Source of the DNA: Schizochytrium sp. TIO01
Taxonomy: Eukaryota > Protista > Bigyra: Labyrinthulomycetes
Direction of reading: 5' to 3'
NCBI GenBank assembly: GCA_004764695.1
Contig: SMSO01000006.1
Coordinates: 635,859 to 699,858 of the forward strand
Length of the DNA stretch: 64,000 bases
The notes under the pieces were generated by a model. The model searched no databases, had not been told where the DNA came from, and saw nothing but the letters and a program-made list of their open reading frames with translations. Positions 8,217-37,679 of the stretch are shown in pieces. The position numbers and the translations under genes were made by a program. Position 1 is the first letter of the stretch. Each line of letters opens with the position of its first letter.

Positions 8217-9277
8217 AGCGAACGAATAGATTAAATTCATTGAAGGCGTGCCGCGAAACTCGCAGCCTGACAATCAGCGGCAGCAGAAGAAGAAGGAAAT
8301 AAGCATCACGTATATATTACTTTTGGTTGTTTCGCAACCTGCAGGTGTTCGCTCAGACCTGTGGCTCTTAGCTGGACTATTTTTTTCAGCCGCTGAGAAA
8401 AGAGGCGCTAACCGTGTCTTTCTTTCCGCTAATCATCAAACTTTGAAGAACTGGCAGTAAAGGAGGAAACTGGAGCATCATTCGGAAGGGTGGCATACGC
8501 GCGTCACTGCCAACTTCCAACTGCGAGCCTCTCATACGCACCGCTGTAATGCCAACAACGTTCTATTCCAAATGATCTTTTCACTTTTCACTTCTTAAAA
8601 ACAAATATTTTTTTTTTTAAAATTAAGAAAGCATGACGGATATGAAAAAAGGTCGTGCGCGGAAACTGAGCTCTATCCTCTGCAATTGTGGTGCTTCAAG
8701 CAGGGCAAATACGAGGGCAAGTCGCCTCTCCCGTGTTCAACTCTCCGCGAATCTCTGCTCAGTCTGTCAATCACTGCACGCCGCTCGAAGCGATTCTCGC
8801 TCTTATGCTTCTCCATAATTTATCCGACAAGAACAAGACTAAAAAGTAAAAGTACTTATTTATTTTAATCAAGTAATCAGAACTACTGAAAAATAGGAAC
8901 AACTTCGTAATGATAAGCTCATCCCTCAGATTTCAAATTTCGAGAAACTAGGGCGCCTACTACGCACTACACTAGGAGACCGCGGCCTTCATTCCCGCCC
9001 CTGCTCTTAGCAAGACGCCTTTCGCTTCGCCCTCTTTGTTGTATCTACGCGCGCCTCCTTTCCAAGCTACCTCGACGACCTTTCTCCATGCATGAGTGCA
9101 TCAGCCCATGCATGCGTGGATGCGTGGCTGCGGCGTTCTCGGGTGCTCTCAGGCCGTCCGCTCGAGCGTCTGCCACGCCTCCTCTTCGAGCCGCTCTCTG
9201 CAACGTCACGCTTGAAGCAAAGCTCGCTCACGCCTGCATAGTCTTTGCAGCGCATTCAAAGACGTGGATGGATGGCT

Positions 9278-9317
9278 AGATAAGATAGATGGATAGATAG
9301 ATAGATAGATAGATAGA
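9278..9317. repeat. (GATA)n microsatellite
   Basis: Seen directly, slightly imperfect. Confidence 0.85.
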
Positions 9318-12300
9318 CAAATGAAAGAAAGGCGAAGCTGTGAAATTGAGCGCCCATCTCCTTCGAAGTGCCCTCCGTTCGAGCTTCTTTCTTCAAGTTT
9401 TCTCTTTCTTTCTTCAAGTTTTCTCTTTCTTGGAGAACTAACCTGTCTGCCGCAACCCCCCACGATCAGAACTCTGCGAACAAGCAACGGCAATGGCGGC
9501 GCCGCTCCAATAAGCGCCGCAGCGCTTTCAGGCGGCGTACGGACGCATACGCAGCACACTTTTGGCGCTCCCTGAATGAGAAAAGGGCGCTGGGATCGTG
9601 AGAAGAGCAGGCGAGAGAACAGAACAACTCTATCTCTCCTTCTCGCTTTGTTCTTGTTATCGCCGGCCTAGATTTATTTTCTATTATATAACAGGCTACT
9701 ATCATATACTTCAAGTTTGCGTTATTTTTCATTTATCAAACGTGTTTGTTTTTGTATTGATTTATTTCTTCATTAAAAAATAAATAAATTAAAAAATAAA
9801 ATATATATATTTGAAATATTTGAAATAATTTAAAAAAAAAAGAGTAACAGGTAGGTAGAGAGAGAGAGAAGAAGTAACAATTCCAAGTTTGGAAAACCCT
9901 TTCCATTTGCATGTCTGACGCGGCGCCTCGATCGACACAAATCGCGGCTGCTGTTGAATTAGTTCTCAGCAACTGGACGCCGCAATTTCCAGGCCACGGT
10001 AAGCACGTCTCTTCCGGAGGATCTTCGTCGAGCTTTCTGCCTCTCTCGCCCGGAAGAGCTCTCGAATCGAGCCGCCACACGGCCCATCCGCCCTCTCTCT
10101 CTCTGCGTGCGCAGATTTTCAAATTTCACAGACATCCTTCAATTGCAGCTCTTTCTTTCTTGTTCTGTTCTGCTTATTTACAGCCGTGGCTATTATAGTT
10201 AGTTAGTATGCGCTCCCTCCTCCGTTCTCTTCTCTCGTTTTGTCTCGCCGTTCTCTGCCCGCCAGGGACTTCTAGGAGATAACGCTAGCAACCCCGCATA
10301 AGAGGTGCTCGAAGAAAGTGCTTTCGCGCCATCCCGAAACCGAAAGAACGAGGCTTTGGAACGGGAGGCCTATCTGGGCGCTAAGCACTGCTAGCCTACC
10401 TAGTTCTCAAATTCAAATTCTTCAGGGTGTCATTCGACCGATATACAGAGAGGGTGGAGCGTGAAGAACCCAAATTCGACGCAAGGGAACGCACGGGATT
10501 TCAATTCCTGCTCAAAGCCGGGCGTCGTGTGTGGAATTCGGCCGCGGCACGAGGCGCTTTGGAGGCGGTTTTGTCCGCTGCGGAGAAGAATCGATCCATT
10601 TCACAATTACAGAACCAGCGAATCGATCTGCGGCAGGGACTGCTTCTTCTTCGCTGCCGCCTACCTACTATAAACACAGAAGGCGGTGACGAGCCCTCCA
10701 GATCGAGCACTTTCGAGGTCTTCCGTTCTCTGCGCTGCCGTGCTTTCTTCCTTTCAAGCGGCAGATAGCAGTAGGTAGCTGACACCTACGGCCTGCTCGT
10801 CACTACCACTTTTAGTTTCATTTTAAACGGAGAATATATATATAGTTATAAAAACAAAAACAAATGTAAGAACAAGCAAGAAAGAGGATTCAAAGGCAAG
10901 AGCCAAACGCAATACCGACTAAGAGTGATTGCTGTAGGAAGCACCTTTGGGAAAGGTTTTGGTTCATTTCATGTGACAACCAATCTTTGTTTTGCTTTAT
11001 ATTATTTTATTATATTTTATGTTATTTTGTTTAAAAAAAATAGGTTATAACAAATGAAGCACTAAGAAGAGAGAACACGCATCGTTCGAGCGCTTCGCAG
11101 ATTCTGAGCAGCTTGCCATGATCATGCGCGGCCCAGAGAACGGCACGGAGGTGGCAGCCGTTCTCCGTATAACACTGGCAAGTGACGATCCAACGGCGTG
11201 AGCTCTGCTTCTGAGGATACCGACGCCACGGCTTCACTAGTCCATCCGGTGACTTCTCTCGTATTTCCATCAATCGATCTCTGCAGTTGAAAAAATCCTC
11301 ACAACTTGAAGTCGGTACTGTAAATATCTTCTTTTGATAATTTCCGACAACTCCAACGCACATCGCAGTTGGAAAAAATTGCGCAGGCTTGGGCTCCGTT
11401 TGGTGAGGAGTTGCTTCACCATCGTGGCATCCATACGAGCAGGATGAGCGAAGATCGCCCACCGTCGAAACAAGGATTGCTCCCCTGTAAAAAGCGAGAG
11501 CCGCATCCAAAATGGCCTCGCCGTTAAAACACGACGTTCTGACGTACCTACCTACCTACCCATGTGCCTGATGTTAACCAGCTGCGATAGAATAAATTGT
11601 ACGAGTGGCATACGTACGCGCGGAGTCGCATACCTCTGCATTTAGGTGTCATGAATCTCGCGAATCGAGAACTCCGCCCAAGTCAACGTAGATTTATTTC
11701 TCCAACGGAACTGGACTTGGACTTGGATTTAGGCTGGACTTGAGCCTTAACTTTTAGTTTGCGCTAGGCGGGCAATCGATCTGCCGCGGCATTTCAAGTC
11801 CGCATTCGGCATCATGTTCTTCAAAACCTGTAGCCTGATGATTGATTGATTTCCTTGCTCAATTAATTTCTATTTTATTTCTTTAATTTAAAAAAAAAAA
11901 AAAAAGAGAAGAAAAAAGTAAAAGTAAATTAGTCAATAAAAAATTCTTTCGAAGTAGGTACCAATTTCCGATTTCTCGTAAGTTTCTAGCTACGATAAAC
12001 TCTTCCGAAGCTTGCGACTCTCTTCCAGCATGATGGAGGAGGGCTCGTCAGAGCAGCTGGGTCCTTGAGGCCAATCTGATTTATGCCGCTGCTTTTGGCT
12101 TATCAGGGCTCTCAGACTTGCACCCCTCCCGCAGAGACGGCTGAAGACTGTACCTACTCCATTAGTAGGCAGAACGGGGCTTGCTTCTTTCTAGAGGCGG
12201 ATCTAACTCTCTATGTATCTATGGCTTCAAAATGTTCTGTGGAAATCAGGCCTGACTCGATCACTCAGCCATTCATTGAAAACTCGAGGACGTGGCACCT

Positions 12301-22670: not shown

Positions 22671-23002
22671 CTGGTTTATATGCTTTCTGTGTGTTTGAAC
22701 TAAAACTTCAGCAGACAAGATATCGTTATGCTATTCTTCATTAATAGTATTACTGCTTGGTATAGCTTTTTTCATTTTCTCATTTTAATCTAAACATACA
22801 TTTTTTCGTTTACATATCGAGAGAATGCCCAAGAAGTCAACAGATTCTCGTAACAGGCGTTGATATACTTTATTTACCGGTATGAACTTTTGTAAAACTA
22901 TGTCCTGAAAGTACTTTCATCCTAAATTTACAAAGGATGAATTGAAAAACAAAAAGAAAATCCAAAGGAGAGATGAATGAGCGACGCTGTACCTTCACCT
23001 AG

Positions 23003-25116
23003 TTACGGTTCGGGAACTCGGATAGCATATGTCTCAATGACCTTGGCCACAGGGATTGCATCGACATCTTTGCCAGGAAGACCATTGAGTCGCCGCTTTC
23101 GAAATCGGTGAATTCCATAACCAAAGACTCCCAAAAATGCAGCAGCACCCACGGCACTTGGAGCGGCGATAATGGCAATCGACTTGGTCGATGCTGCAAC
23201 TACAGAGGCTGTTGGATTAATCGTAGGACTCTCCGTGGATAAAAATGGGCTTGGGGCGCTTGTTGTTGCTACTGGGGCTGAGGTAGATGTGGGCGCAGGC
23301 GTGGAGACAGGAGCTTCTGTTGAAGTTGGGGCTGTAGAAGGAGCTCCCGTCATGGTCGGCGCCTCTGTCGTAGGTGCTCCTGTCGTTGGAACTGTTGTAG
23401 GGGCAGATGTGGTAGGACACGATCCGCTGTTCCCAGGTAAGTGCTGATCACTAATCCATGAGAGATTAGGTTGCTCTCCACATAATGGATTGCCTGTTGC
23501 CCAGCTTTTATATTTAAGAGGCACTCAGCCCGAGCATATTCGTTCAAAGTTAGTTTTCATTATTATCATTTGGCTAATGTTTCAACTTACAATGTGTTAA
23601 GGTTTGTCAAGGCAGTCAGTCCCATAGGTAAAGATTGAATGTTATTGTCGCTGATATTCCTGTGATCACTCAAGATTGTATTATTCCGAAAATGGTATAA
23701 ATAAACTTTGTTAGTCGTAAGTTCCTCGCTCTGTTGCTCTGTTGTATCAGATGCGATACTTAAACTTACAACCATGTCAATGCCTCGAAATCTAGCACCA
23801 CACTAGGAAAGGTATAAAATTCATTCTGGTCGAGAGCCCTGTGAAATATAATAGAGAGTATAATATGTTAACACGCGTTTTTCCAATCAATAGATAAGCT
23901 TTCTCTTTCAATCATTTGTCGTAACGTACAACAAAGTAGGATCAAGTAATGACCACGCAGATGGGAGAGAAGAAAGGGAGTTCTTGCTCAGGTAGCTGTG
24001 AGACGCGAAAAAAAAAAACCAAAAAAAACATATGAGTAATGAAGCAAATGCAGAGCGATAATTAAAGGATAAGAACGTACAGTTGATCAAGGGTAGTGAT
24101 TGCACCCAATACATCCGGGAGGCTAGTAAATTCATTTGAGGCGAGGTCACTATGGATTGCATCATGACATACGTTAGAAACATATTCCCTACATATGTTT
24201 GGACATGACAAATTTGATGCGTGGAAGCATTGAATACACTTACAGAATTTCAAGACTCGTAAGGCCGTCAAGTGTTGAGGGAAGGGAGTCCAGCTGGTTC
24301 GATGATACATTGCTGTTTTTAGTAGTGGCAGGGACATGTGAGCTTTAGTTCTGGATGAGATTGTCATGATACCAACTTACAGCATTGTCAAAGCTGCCAA
24401 GCTCCCTAAGCTTATAGGCAATTCAGCTAGCAGATTATTTTCCATCCGACTATGTCATGCGATACCAAAATAGAAGAATAAAGGGTGCTATATTAGTACT
24501 TTTGCATAATGGATTATCAAAAAAAATTCTTCAATCTTTGCAAACTTACAATGTTTTTAAAGCATTTAAAGTGCTTATTTCGTCAGTAATAGTCTCCAAA
24601 GCATTGTCAGCAATTACACTGTGGAATCATTGAAATTAATGTATGCAGGTTAGCGATATTTACTTGAAGCTACAGAGCTACTCTGTATTATAGTTTCACG
24701 GAGTACTTACAGTGTTGTGAGTTTGGTTAGAGACGAAATTGTCGATGGTATACTGCTGATACTTCCCTTGATCTCACTAAAGGTTGACAGTATAAAGTGT
24801 TGTTAGGAATTGCTTCTTCATAATTGTGCAAGAGTGAAACAATCTTGCTATTTGGGGCAACTTACAGGTACTGCAAATTCACCGCTTCGGCCGTTCCTGT
24901 TGGGAAGTCTGTGCATTCCAGGCAAGTCAACGTCGTCAATGTAGTTAAGAGGCTTAAGACTGCACTGCAGCTACTTCCATTGCATTCACTTGTTCCGCAG
25001 GCACCGTTTGATGTGCATGGGTCTGCGCCGTGAAGAACGTGTGCCTGATCAAGCAGGATGCTCAGTATTACCAATACCATTAGAGACCTTTCACGACCCC
25101 ATTTGAACAGATCCAT
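23003..25116 (-). CDS. Leucine-rich-repeat receptor-like type I membrane protein, 10 exons, 432 aa
   Basis: Manually spliced exons in transcript order: 25116-24866, 24776-24711, 24618-24550, 24449-24381, 24312-24244, 24149-24081, 23995-23930, 23838-23770, 23659-23591, 23504-23003 (1299 nt, in frame). All donors are GTAAGT/GTACGT and all acceptors end in AG. Product: signal peptide, Cys cap, LxxLxLxxNxLxxLP repeats, GNPLC cap, T/S/P/A stalk, TM helix, RFRKRR and a short tail. Confidence 0.88.
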
Positions 25117-28100
25117 AGTGGACCAGGACCTCCTCTTGTGCAGCTATCTCTTAAGCTGCGTGCCAACTACCCAGTGCTGCTTTTGGTGTTTGATCAGCCC
25201 AAAACGAGCAGGAATCGTTCAACCTGGCCTCCGTTACGTGCACTCGAAGTTGTTGGGCAAGTCTATATCTGTAGCACTTTTGGGTCTCCTGAGTCTTTGC
25301 AATCGACTCGCCAGATCCTTTGAGAGGTCAGCCCCCAAAGACTACTGCTCCACCTTTATAAGCGCTAGTCTCCACGATTTCTACTGCAAGCGACCGCAAT
25401 TGTCCACTAGGTTTTGGTTTGCTCAACTCGCTCTCTAATATTGGTTTAGGCCTAGTCGATTTTATTTGCATTTTGCATCCCGAAGTTTTCATTCTTCATT
25501 GCCCCCCTATTCTTGTATGGCCCATTAGCCGTCTTTCAATCACTCCTAATGTTTAGAATAGGAGCGCCTTAGTATTCTTCCCCCCACACAAGTGACCATG
25601 ACTTCCCTTGCACGTGCCGCCTCTCCAGCTCTCAAAAGGTTTCCTGACTTACGAAGATGCTATAGTTAGTTTTCTCAGTTCGAGGGCTGGCGTGTAGACT
25701 AAAGAGATTAGCGTCTCGTTTCGTCCTTAGGATGGCAGCAGCCCCTCCCCCCCCCCCCCCTGGCGCGCCCTCAGGCTGCAAGTCTGGAATGGATCCTCGA
25801 CGACCTCTGGAACTATGAACGTAATTGACCGCGATGAATTCGTAAATACTATATAGTAGTAGATAGGTACTATCTACTGCGCACTTTTCAATTCTTATCA
25901 ATAGTAACAAGAAAAAGAAGGCAGTAGGCAGTCCCTAGTCGTGCCTTAGCAGTGCTGACTAGCAGTGAATTTACAACTCACTTCAGAACCGTGCTCGAGA
26001 AGCCTGGACTTTGCATAATTCGTCGTTTCTCTCAGCTACTTAAGATCGTCTGTCGCCGACTTGTCTGCTCCGCCCTTGACGCGCGACGAAGGCCTGGCAA
26101 CAACTGTGAGGTGCATCATTTTTCTCCACTGGCTGGCCTCATGAGAAAGCTTAGGGCTATGGAAATACAAGACTGAGATTTGTTGTGCAAGGTTTTCAGA
26201 GCAATGTTAGTATGTCTGGAAACCTTGAGGTCGAGGGGAACTTTGTTAGACGTACACGCATAGGAAGGGGGGCACAGGCAAATGGGGCTCCACAACTTCT
26301 AGCTGATATGTGCTTGTTCTTCAAGACTTATTAACTGGCTCGGCCTCTCGTTTTTCTATTCTACGAAGAAGCTGTGGCAAAGGTTCTAATGCCGTTTGGC
26401 ACCATGTGCAACATTGCACAAACCAAGGAAGTAACATTTTATAAGCCTGGAATACAGTAGTGCTCACTCACTATCAATATTAGTGGAACATGGGGTACTC
26501 ATCGGTGCAAGGTATATAACATTACAACTTGGAGATTGGGCAGTCAGAAGTAGCTGTGCTTGCGCTCAAGTATGAAACTCTGTAGGTACTACTCGTATGA
26601 ATACCCTTCAGTTCAGCCCTCACGTATTGCACAAAAGTTTTACGAGCAAAGCTTGTCCGGAGGCTTTTGACCTTTGCTTTGAAGACGGTTTCATATTCGA
26701 ATTGAAATGTTAGGGGCGATGCATGAAGGAAAGCTTGCTTATAAGGCTGGTGCAGAGATAACATGATGGGATGGAACTAATAAGCCAGTGATATGGATGA
26801 ACAATAGCAGCTCCAGAAGACGCTCGAATAAAAGGCTTGAAGAACATCTCGGGAGATACTAAGCAAACAAATCCTCGAAGAAGCGAGGGTAGTGGGGTTT
26901 GTCTGTTGGGTAAATTTAGACTCATTGGCGTTTTCGGTCTCTACTACTGCTTTCAAGTTGAGGCCTCAACTTTGTTAACCATGTTGCAAAAATAAGGTCA
27001 TTGAACTGGTTGAGTTAGTTCGTTCGTGAATGCACGTACGGCATGATTCCTGTCGGCTTGCTTGAGGAATTGGTCTCAGATCCCAGGGTTTGTCATAAAT
27101 ATTCCCACTAGCTGAAGCCTTCGCACTTGATAAGACTACTTAACCAAAACAATAAGAGATATGGAATCAAGAGGTGTGAACCCTCGCAAACTTGGATTTA
27201 ATCTCGGCTCTCATCGCACAGCCCAAGAACTTCCTCCGAGCCATTGCGGAACATACTACACCTGTGCAAAATCGCGTCACAAGAGCAGTTTCCCAGCACC
27301 TCGCAAGTGCCATTGAGTCCTCTTCTTTAGCATCACTTGCTGCCTATATCTAGAAATCAAGATTTCTATTCATAAACAGTGTTTAATCTCAAATGTTACT
27401 TCGACTACCTACCTCATAAACAGGAATGTAGGCAGGCACACACCTACGATCGCAAGTAGGTTACTACTACTGCTACTACTAGTACCCCTTATGATGCCCT
27501 TCTTGTGTCGGAACACCGGAGCTGCATATTCGTCTTCGTAACAGCTGCCCATATCGTATGTGCCACGTCTGCTATGGAAGGTTCGCGCCAAGCGTAAAGG
27601 ATTTCATTTGTGGCGAGCCACATCTAAGCAATCCTTCACTCGGTCGATGAATTCCGATTGAGCGTATAGCGCTACTTTGCAATTCAGAGCAGATGTAGTG
27701 GCAGATCCCTACTGTTTTCGTTAGACAGGGTGTAGATTTCGTTTGGTTAGGAGCCTGCTACCTTCTCGGTAGCAACTCCAGGAAGAAACAATCGACCATT
27801 TGCCAAGTGATACTACTTGATTAGCAGGCAGTAGGCACAGTATGTCCCTGTTTTATAGGGCTGACTGACTATTCCGATTAAAGGCGGCTTTGGGATTATG
27901 CATGTATTTTTTAAGTTAATTAATTAGAAATTCTTAATTAAAAGAAGAAGAAAAGTACTTTCTTTTGGGGGTACATAGGGACTAGTAGATATAACTATGC
28001 AGCCGCTAGCGAGAACTATTTGATTGACCCGATGCGACTGCCTGAGATGACCATACATACAAGAACAGATGGTACCTCGCCACTGCCGCTTGAGCATCAG

Positions 28101-35771: not shown

Positions 35772-37679
35772 CTAGTAGCCAATGGCGAGGCCATCTGCCC
35801 GTCCATCAGAACCGCCACAGAGAACACCTGTTTTTCTGTCCCTGGTGATAATCTGCGCACGACCAAAGAGCATGCGGTGGAATCCAGAAATCGTATATCC
35901 CCCCCGTGGTTTGAACACCTTGTGCCCCATTCGCTCAAGCTGCTCAATAACCTTCGGGTCAAACCCATCCTCAAAAGCAACTTCGCCGTTCGCCTCGCCA
36001 TCGCATATTACAAAACGAGGCATGTCTATTGCAGTTTGAGGATCGAAACCATAGTCGAGCATGTTAACCATAAGCTGCACATGAGCCGGTGCTTGAGCAA
36101 AGCCACCCATGTTGGTAAAAGAGCAAAAGAGCTCTTTAGTGTCATGATGCAGCGCCAAAGCAGGGATGATAGTGTGGTATGGACGCTTGCGAGGAGCCGC
36201 AGCGTTTGGGTGGCCAGGTTCTAAAGAAAAATTCCCTCCTCGGTTTTGTAGAGTAAAACCACAACCTTTAGGAACAATTCCACTTCCAAAACCTTCATAG
36301 TTCGAGTTGACCATTGAAACAGCGTTACCCATTCCGTCAATGACCTCTGTGTGTTTACGCGTTAACCATTCACCTCGTATCATAATAGTCATAGTTATAG
36401 TAATAGCAACAGCGATATAAATGTCGATTAAATAAAAATACCAAAGCAAAGCGAAACCCAAAACGGTCATGTTAGTTATCCGCTCCACTAGTACAGAGCT
36501 TGTCATAGGAAAAGAAACAATGCAAAAATTTCAAGACAGAACATGTGTACACGTACGGAAGGAAACAGTATCACAGCTTGAGACTGGTGTACCATACTTG
36601 ACATCCGCAACTGGAATATCCGGGTTGAAAGCACTCATACGAATATCAGCATAGTTAGACTCAATAAGCTCCTGTGTAGGAACATCCACTACATCAGGGT
36701 CAGCAACAAACTGGCGAGCATCAGCAAATGCAAATCGCATACTTTCAACAAGTAAATGAAGGTGGTCTTTAGAACCGTGTGGCATTGTTGTGGGGTCTAC
36801 TCCACAGCCGCGTCGTTTTGCAGCGCTGAGCAGGTTAAGACCCATGAGAGCAGCAATTCCTTGACCACTGGGAGGGACCTCAAGAATGTCCATGTCCCCA
36901 TACCTCACACAAATTGGCTCAGGGAACGTGCTGAAGTGCTCTGCAAGATCATCCTCAGTAATCGTAGATCCCATTTCGTGTAAGATCTCGCAAATTGCTT
37001 TCCCTGCTCGTCCTTTATAGAAAGCGTCCTTGCCACCAGCTCCCAGTTCCCGCATTGTCTTTGCCAAGCCAGGATTTCTGAAGATCTCCCCAGCTCGGGG
37101 TGGGCGCGCCTCTCCAGAGATCTCGTCTTGCACAAGCATTTCCCCACGTGTTTCCTGAGGCCTGAGCTGACCCTGAAGATGGGCCCATTGCATTGCTGTG
37201 AGACCAGACACTGGAAACCCCTCCTCAGCAAGCTTGGCAGCAGGCTCTAACACATCTGAGAGACTCAGTGAGCCCCATTTCTCCATAGCATCAGCCCACC
37301 CAGCAGCTGTCCCAGGTACAGTGACACAGTGTACGCTTTCGTGTGGTAGGTATTTAGATCCTGCAGGTGCTGCTTCAATGGCCTTTTCAAGTGTCAGCCC
37401 TGATGGAGACCTTCCGGATCCATTTAAGGCATGCACTTTTTTCGAAGAGGCTTCGAAAAATAGTAAAAAGCAGTCTCCACCGAGCCCTGTCGAGCAGGGC
37501 TCAGTCACGTTGAGTGCAGCTGCGATTGCAATCGCGGCGTCGACAGCATTGCCACCATCCCTTAACACCTGGAGGCCCACGGAGCTTGCCAGCGGCTGCG
37601 AACTGGCGACCATGCCATGGCGAGCATATACAGCAGACCTTCGCGAGCGAAAGTGGACGTCGGGGGTCATAGATGTCAT
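35772..37679 (-). CDS. GGT: Gamma-glutamyltranspeptidase family (Ntn hydrolase, YwrD-like), 2 exons, 565 aa
   Basis: Exon 1 is 37679-36557; a 210-nt GTACGT...ACAG intron spans 36556-36347; exon 2 is 36346-35772. The splice restores DTVSFQVIDGMGNAVSMVNSNYEGFGSG (nucleophile Thr). Other motifs: GGNAVDAAIA, EPCSTGLGGD, RKRPYHTIIP, GSDGRADG. Confidence 0.92.

Follow-up and report, generated by a model that had tools for sequence, protein, structure and literature searches.

A leucine-rich repeat gene with one repeat per phase-2 exon in an intron-poor thraustochytrid genome

Described genes with one repeat per exon

Genes in which each leucine-rich repeat (LRR) has a phase-2 exon to itself are known from brown algae and ciliates, and in vertebrates from hormone receptors. 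In brown-algal ROCO genes each LRR occupies an exon of 72 nt bounded by phase-2 introns, and exon shuffling, positive selection and alternative transcripts have been described (PMC3341825, PMC11378527); in Ectocarpus the alternative transcripts concern the LRR exons themselves (PMC11378527). In the ectodomains of the LH, FSH and TSH receptors, as cited in PMC11378527, every LRR is encoded by a separate exon of ~70 nt and every intron is phase 2, a layout that has been taken as evidence of growth from one prototype exon. An origin by duplication of such a unit is the interpretation given for the published one-LRR-per-exon cases.

Here we report an RNA-confirmed gene model with nine introns for a predicted LRR surface protein of a heterotrophic, intron-poor stramenopile. 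The gene lies within a stretch of 64,000 nucleotides, the whole of which is called the window below, and it extends the one-LRR-per-phase-2-exon design to a small family with an intron site of its own. With the LRR-ROCO genes of the brown algae Ectocarpus and Saccharina it shares a stramenopile host, one LRR per small symmetric exon, introns that are all phase 2, and LP-type LRRs of a similar 23-24 residues (PMC3341825, PMC11378527). However, the ROCO exons measure 72 nt and are bounded after NxLx (GxxPxxL...LxxLxLxxNxLx), whereas those of the window gene measure 69 or 66 nt and are bounded within the fourth-position Leu. Furthermore, the ROCO products are cytoplasmic ROC-COR GTPases, whereas the window protein lacks ROC-COR and combines a leader and caps with a stalk and a membrane helix. 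The brown-algal genes also stand out by shuffled exons that are nearly identical, by positive selection and by alternative transcripts, none of which was seen in the window gene.

The LRR genes of Tetrahymena offer a further comparison, as they too belong to a unicellular eukaryote and show arrays of equal-length LRR exons with a phase-2 bias. Their exons are exactly 90 nt long and number tens of thousands, spread over thousands of young genes that cluster near centromeres and telomeres, whereas the window gene is single-copy, lies in the chromosome interior and has eight old, diverged exons of 66/69 nt; set side by side in this way, the two have the phase-2 bias alone in common. In the glycoprotein-hormone receptors of animals the LRRs are fused to a seven-helix receptor, unlike in the window protein, and the resemblance is one of design, with no homology claimed.

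Exon-intron structure and transcripts

GT-AG parsing of the minus strand resolved ten exons and nine introns (Table 1). All nine introns are phase 2, with GTAAGT as donor in seven and GTACGT in two, and with CAG, TAG or AAG as acceptor. Each exon has YT (CT or TT) at its 3′ end, and the common intron site is the fourth-position Leu/Phe codon of LxxLxLxxN, so that the split codon is read as Leu or Phe regardless of which exon follows. The earlier note, made from the letters of the window, had described nine introns of 68-110 nt, all in phase 2 and all cutting the same Leu codon, and eight internal exons of 66 or 69 nt with a single LRR each and CT/TT ends. The parsing returned both descriptions exactly.

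Table 1. Features of the LRR gene and related loci of the same genome (positions refer to the window unless a contig is named)
Feature	Position	Strand	Properties	Basis
LRR gene	25116..23003	-	10 exons, 9 introns	GT-AG parsing
Start codon ATG	25116-25114	-		parsing
Exon 1	24866..25116	-	251 nt; start codon, hydrophobic leader (~aa 1-30), Cys-rich N-terminal cap, start of LRR 1; ends CT|GTAAGT	parsing
Intron 1	24777..24865	-	89 nt, phase 2, GTAAGT..TAG	parsing, RNA contigs
Exon 2	24711..24776	-	66 nt, 1 LRR, Gly replacing the usual Asn	parsing, RNA contigs, exon alignment
Intron 2	24619..24710	-	92 nt, phase 2	parsing, RNA contigs
Exon 3	24550..24618	-	69 nt, 1 LRR	parsing, RNA contigs, exon alignment
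Intron 3	24450..24549	-	100 nt, phase 2	parsing, RNA contigs
Exon 4	24381..24449	-	69 nt, 1 LRR	parsing, RNA contigs, exon alignment
Intron 4	24313..24380	-	68 nt, phase 2	parsing, RNA contigs
Exon 5	24244..24312	-	69 nt, 1 LRR	parsing, RNA contigs, exon alignment
Intron 5	24150..24243	-	94 nt, phase 2	parsing, RNA contigs
Exon 6	24081..24149	-	69 nt, 1 LRR	parsing, RNA contigs, exon alignment
Intron 6	23996..24080	-	85 nt, phase 2, GTACGT donor; T-run length differs among strains	parsing, contigs
Exon 7	23930..23995	-	66 nt, 1 LRR	parsing, RNA contigs, exon alignment
Intron 7	23839..23929	-	91 nt, phase 2, GTACGT donor	parsing, RNA contigs
Exon 8	23770..23838	-	69 nt, 1 LRR	parsing, RNA contigs, exon alignment
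Intron 8	23660..23769	-	110 nt, phase 2; retained in small low-depth X4 and X7 contigs	parsing, contigs
Exon 9	23591..23659	-	69 nt, last full LRR	parsing, RNA contigs, exon alignment
Intron 9	23505..23590	-	86 nt, phase 2	parsing, RNA contigs
Exon 10	23003..23504	-	502 nt; C-terminal cap, stalk, membrane helix, tail, TAA stop	parsing
C-terminal cap GNPLCG..C	~23417-23503	-		inspection of translation
T/S/P/A-rich stalk	~23183-23416	-	~78 residues	inspection of translation
Transmembrane helix	~23111-23182	-	24 hydrophobic residues	inspection of translation
Stop codon TAA	23005-23003	-		parsing
Twin gene	C13:4564972-4567067		8 exons: 224 nt, six of 69 nt, 586 nt; seven phase-2 introns	
C13 cluster	C13:4527-4545 kb		at least 3 genes	
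C24 gene	~C24:4781-4783 kb		one or two LRRs per exon, mixed	
Chromosome-end LRR units	C5:1794-1798 kb and 1825-1830 kb		~385-bp near-identical units beside rDNA	

Four public sequencing runs were compared with positions 22800-25300 of the window: X1, which is DNA-like, and X4, X7 and X8, which come from three studies and are presumed to be RNA. All nine junctions occur base-exact in spliced contigs from the three independent studies, and a 5042-nt contig of X8 holds the complete chain of nine. The first junction (24866/24776), for example, is found in spliced contigs of X7 and X8 and in a loose end of X4. Two junctions are unlisted in X4, where they are covered by loose ends running into the canonical neighbouring exon, and every loose end of the RNA contigs is consistent with a canonical junction. 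The DNA-like run X1 contains the unspliced form of the gene, and a single DNA-level copy was found in the 64.07-Mb genome; hence, the joined contigs stem from mRNA. The gene is real and expressed. Intron 8 or 9 is kept in a few short contigs of low depth, which fits pre-mRNA or trace DNA.

The same runs bear on the proposal of the earlier note that the gene diversifies its product by splicing. The eight symmetric LRR exons would then be skipped or combined in the manner suggested for ROCO genes of brown algae or for DSCAM of insects. The exon structure would allow this, since with 2-2 symmetry and a YT end in every internal exon any skip keeps the frame and yields Leu or Phe at the joint, and the alternative LRR-exon transcripts of Ectocarpus ROCO genes provide a precedent (PMC11378527). 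However, neither an exon-skipped nor an exon-swapped junction was present in the contigs of the three RNA-like runs, keeping in mind that assembled contigs drop rare isoforms, and the three RNA assemblies contain the nine canonical junctions only, one of them as a full chain. Furthermore, the splice sites are of strong consensus throughout, and the few exons all differ from one another, which sets them apart from an array of interchangeable alternatives. A splicing-based generator of diversity is thus very improbable. What the contigs show is a dominant constitutive isoform, next to which low-level or condition-specific skipping is possible, since contigs lose rare variants. The junction check suggested by the earlier note accordingly upheld the introns and returned no exon-skipped isoform from the assembled contigs, and diversification by splicing is unsupported.

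The surroundings of the gene differ sharply in intron content. The coding strand of the 2.1-kb gene contains the motif GTAAGT seven times, vs 26 times on both strands of the remaining 62 kb, the latter being about the random expectation. The neighbouring genes consist of one long ORF each and match Pfam domains over their full length, in agreement with the near-intronless neighbours that had been noticed at the outset; among them are a glycerol kinase, a protein kinase, an M13 peptidase and a Patched-like protein. The glycerol kinase has at least 90% identity to a peptide of the marine-protist transcriptome sample MMETSP0958. Genome-wide, a six-frame search with the Pfam model LRR_8 gave 141 matches, nearly all in long uninterrupted frames, and one intron per repeat is therefore unusual in this genome, also among its LRR genes. 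The window gene itself is absent from these matches. For annotation this means that genes of its kind escape intron-blind ORF and domain scans, as the LRR_8 search shows.

Architecture of the predicted protein

Conceptual splicing of the ten exons from their window coordinates gives a product of 432 aa. By inspection it consists, in this order, of a hydrophobic leader (an N-terminal hydrophobic run after basic residues), a Cys-rich cap, nine LxxLxLxxN motifs, a GNPLCG..C cap, a T/S/P/A-rich stalk, a hydrophobic helix and a tail of 35 aa, which follows the helix directly and has a basic start (HRFRKRR). This is the architecture given in the earlier note, where the tail had been put at ~30 aa. 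The nine LRR cores are consecutive with a period of 22-23 residues, eight of them being encoded one per internal exon, and Cys clusters flank them on both sides. Alignment of the eight exon peptides yields the consensus xxxxNxLxSLPSxLxxLTxLTx.

Exon by exon, Pfam reported LRR_4 only, at 15.7 bits vs a cut-off of 27, single exons of 22 aa being too short for the profile. A profile built from the eight exon peptides does match LRR_8-certified arrays of the same genome, for example at C33:3097386-3097451 (E=1.5e-4). In the last exon Pfam gave no domain, enzymatic or other. An exhaustive protein search with exon 1 retrieved its own ORF as present in another strain, together with a repetitive protein that is a spurious match, and thus the N-terminus is without detectable relatives.

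In plant receptor-like proteins (RLPs) and in animal LRR-only membrane proteins, a leader and Cys caps around an LRR solenoid are combined with a single membrane helix and a short, kinase-free tail. Proteins of this kind usually function in adhesion or together with a co-receptor. The predicted layout of the window protein matches this architecture. It differs from the RLPs in its LRR class, a 23-residue LP type as against the 24-residue plant-specific type, and in adding a mucin-like stalk. We consider it probable that the product is a type I membrane protein located at the cell surface, with leader, membrane helix and glycosylation called by eye. Given an LRR ectodomain and a 35-aa tail without catalytic domain, it is most likely a surface protein of binding, adhesion or co-receptor type. 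The nine LxxLxLxxN motifs would form a solenoid as its outer part, which the caps would seal by disulphides and the stalk, probably O-glycosylated, would raise off the membrane.

Age of the repeats, related loci and origin of the array

The run X1 represents a strain diverged by ~1%, in which a single contig spans the whole stretch compared and is collinear with it, indels being confined to introns 3 and 6. Pooled over the strains, the differences amount to 6 synonymous changes in 325 sites and 7 nonsynonymous changes in 971 sites (pN/pS ~0.39); in X1 alone, the most divergent strain, there are 6 synonymous and 3 nonsynonymous changes (ratio ~0.17), and its synonymous divergence of ~2% equals that of its introns (~2%). 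Nonsynonymous changes affect three of the repeats, in convex or loop parts, as well as the leader, the stalk and the membrane helix, and among the listed strain variants there is none at the x positions of the concave face. Amino acid change is not in excess, and the counts, small as they are, point to purifying selection on the gene.

The repeats themselves are old. Compared in register, the 69-nt exons have 30-46% nucleotide identity and the eight exon peptides 19-45% amino acid identity, while similarity among the nine introns is no higher than that of shuffled sequence; comparison of exons and introns gave no sign of recent copying or homogenisation within the gene. A scan of the gene for LRR exons picked up nothing beyond the annotated exons and versions of these that are shortened or extended at the acceptor, so that its introns contain no orphan LRR exon. 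In a genome search the introns matched the gene itself alone, and they resemble nothing elsewhere in the gene or genome.

This last result is relevant to the idea that the introns were gained independently, by an introner-like or site-specific process, at a recurring Leu codon context and not by duplication of a unit. The identical position and phase in every repeat, within an otherwise intron-poor region, would be expected of such a process. However, the introns match nothing else in the gene or genome, which makes an introner-like origin unlikely and speaks against a recent mobile source, and in the related C13 cluster described below introns demonstrably travel with duplicated modules. Taken together, independent gain appears exceedingly improbable.

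Related loci were sought with the eight-exon profile against six frames, with LRR_8 and with donor-anchored scans, and the counts obtained are lower bounds. The profile matched a few LRR genes free of introns, along with several loci of short open frames, the latter sharing a common intron site, YT|GTAAGT in phase 2 at the fourth-position Leu of LxxLxLxxN. At least three further loci carry the intron site of the window gene, making at least four in all, and the number of LRRs varies among them, with eight single-LRR exons in the window gene, six in its twin on C13 and four per module in the C13 cluster. The twin encodes a leader, a short cap, LRRs, a GNSLCGSQP cap, an S/T stalk, a membrane helix and a Cys-rich tail. 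Its first LRR exon is identical to exon 2 of the window gene in 12 of 21 residues, and other exon pairs of the two genes in at most 11 of 22.

Two genes of the C13 cluster are chains of ~800-bp modules, each made of an N-cap, four LRRs in two exons, a C-cap and a linker, with a terminal membrane helix. The modules exceed the period limit of 500 in Tandem Repeats Finder and were seen by repeat search. With 44-47% identity, their C-caps resemble that of the window gene. Segments of the cluster at a distance of 5.3 kb match at 96-99% with their introns included, from which it follows that exon-intron copying took place in the family; evidently, intron-containing units were copied in the C13 cluster during family evolution. 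These duplications are recent and exemplify the mode of growth proposed below for the array. Judged by eye, the beta-strand residues are conserved among the copies, which differ elsewhere.

Such findings could also be read in terms of a recognition repertoire built from germline cassettes that evolve under diversifying pressure. The window gene would then belong to a family whose LRR exons continue to be duplicated, lost and exchanged among paralogues and strains, with selection for change of the binding face. The existence of at least four loci with a common intron site and differing LRR numbers, the near-identity of the C13 modules with their introns, and the presence of a separate one-LRR-per-exon family at a chromosome end would all agree with it. 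On the other hand, the exons of the window gene are without a close match anywhere in the genome and its introns are dissimilar; another strain has a collinear allele in which, per site, synonymous change exceeds nonsynonymous change; and the C13-cluster copies, conserved in their beta strands, do not follow the pattern of a hypervariable binding face. We therefore regard this reading as unlikely. The exon-modular family put forward in the earlier note thus exists insofar as at least three further loci have the same intron site, but close exon matches between the window gene and its paralogues are lacking (best 12 of 21-22 residues). Copying of exon-intron modules is seen in the C13 cluster; the window gene, with its old exons, unrelated introns and introns free of orphan exons, shows no recent shuffling. 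For the family, diversification is supported in a weak, evolutionary sense only.

The reading that we prefer, and hold to be probable as a whole, is that the same-phase, repeat-aligned introns are a historical footprint of unit duplication. An ancestral LRR unit would have borne a phase-2 intron in its fourth-position Leu codon, and the array would have grown long ago by tandem copying of the LRR exon together with its intron, every copy inheriting the intron at the same Leu codon. The family members would then have diverged, some with intron loss, leaving a small family in the genome that inherited the intron site. From the window gene a single constitutive mRNA would be produced. The observations that the earlier note had named as marks of an ordinary gene were largely made, namely that only one isoform was seen, that the gene has a single copy in the DNA, that its exons are collinear in another strain and that amino acid change is not in excess; its other concern, a gene model at odds with RNA, did not materialize, as RNA upheld the model. 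The window gene looks like an ordinary LRR gene with a single observed isoform and a small family, and it serves as a comparison point for the growth of repeat arrays, with no evidence of a new diversification mechanism. A more ambitious reading would make the small 69-nt phase-2 family, with the window gene, its C13 twin, the C24 gene and the C13 cluster as members, a repertoire for surface recognition in thraustochytrids, in which exon skipping is regulated under infection or on contact with prey or substrate and gives receptor variants unseen in the culture transcriptomes examined. It seems to us very improbable.

The chromosome-end LRR genes lie on the same contig as the window gene, ~1.1 Mb away from it. 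They resemble it in belonging to the same genome and in having one LRR per exon and phase-2 introns. However, their exons are 84 nt long, their LRRs are of an RI-like 28-residue class, the intron is placed one codon downstream and the units are near-identical, whereas the window gene has 69-nt exons, LRRs of the LP class, unrelated introns and a chromosome-internal position. The chromosome-end genes are a different family.

LRR genes elsewhere in the genome

Besides the window gene, the genome of Schizochytrium sp. TIO01 carries a twin of it, alike in build, on contig C13. The twin has eight exons (224 nt, six of 69 nt and 586 nt), and all seven of its introns are in phase 2 and lie in the same Leu codon as those of the window gene. 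Its product of 407 aa has a leader and two caps, one short and one with the sequence GNSLCGSQP, as well as an S/T stalk, a membrane helix and a tail of ~100 aa that is rich in Cys (CCGCC). The N-terminal part (SCTGLSRFP) of a further LRR gene on contig C24, which shares the phase-2 intron site of the window gene and mixes exons of one LRR with exons of two, is similar to that of the twin.

At least three genes for LRR membrane proteins also lie clustered on contig C13. Two of them are chains of ~800-bp modules, each running from an N-cap through four LRRs in two exons to a C-cap and a TQ/PT linker, an arrangement rather similar to that of Slit, in which capped LRR domains are repeated. Within the cluster, segments 5.3 kb apart are 96–99% identical, introns included. 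Near the end of C5, the window's own contig, each of the ~385-bp tandem units contains an 84-nt LRR exon of the RI-like class (..IGSEGAKAVAAALKENRSLTSL), with a GTAAGT donor in phase 2 after it.

Positions of the loci discussed (bare positions refer to the window; G000, this genome; C5, C13 and C24, its contigs; L033 to L041, stretches cut from it)
Feature	Position	Strand
Twin of window gene	G000:C13:4564972-4567067 = L041:4973-7068	+
LRR gene cluster	G000:C13:4527000-4545000 = L033 + L034	-
Near-identical pair in cluster	L033 3765-4064 vs 9077-9376	
Near-identical pair in cluster	L033 4127-4307 vs 9439-9619	
C24 LRR gene	G000:C24:~4781000-4783000 = L035	-
~385-bp tandem units	G000:C5:1794000-1798000 = L037 and 1825000-1830000 = L040	+
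Convergent ORF, 1033 aa	19569-22670	+
Gamma-glutamyltranspeptidase gene	35772-37679	-

Neighbours of the window gene

The convergent ORF, for which no Pfam match was found, ends 333 nt from the stop of the window gene (gap 22671-23002). A 5042-nt RNA contig from X8, an RNA-like run, spans both genes, which may abut or overlap at their 3′ ends. The gamma-glutamyltranspeptidase gene consists of two ORFs (382 and 244 aa) with a candidate intron of 58 nt between them (GTA[AC]GT..AG, at about 36556), which is probably the sole intron that the earlier note counted among the neighbours.

Variation in intron 6

The most variable spot of the locus is a homopolymer run in intron 6 of the window gene (23996-24080). 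Strains differ in its length by five bases, and in the contig from X1, a DNA-like run of a strain ~1% divergent, a group of several substitutions surrounds it.
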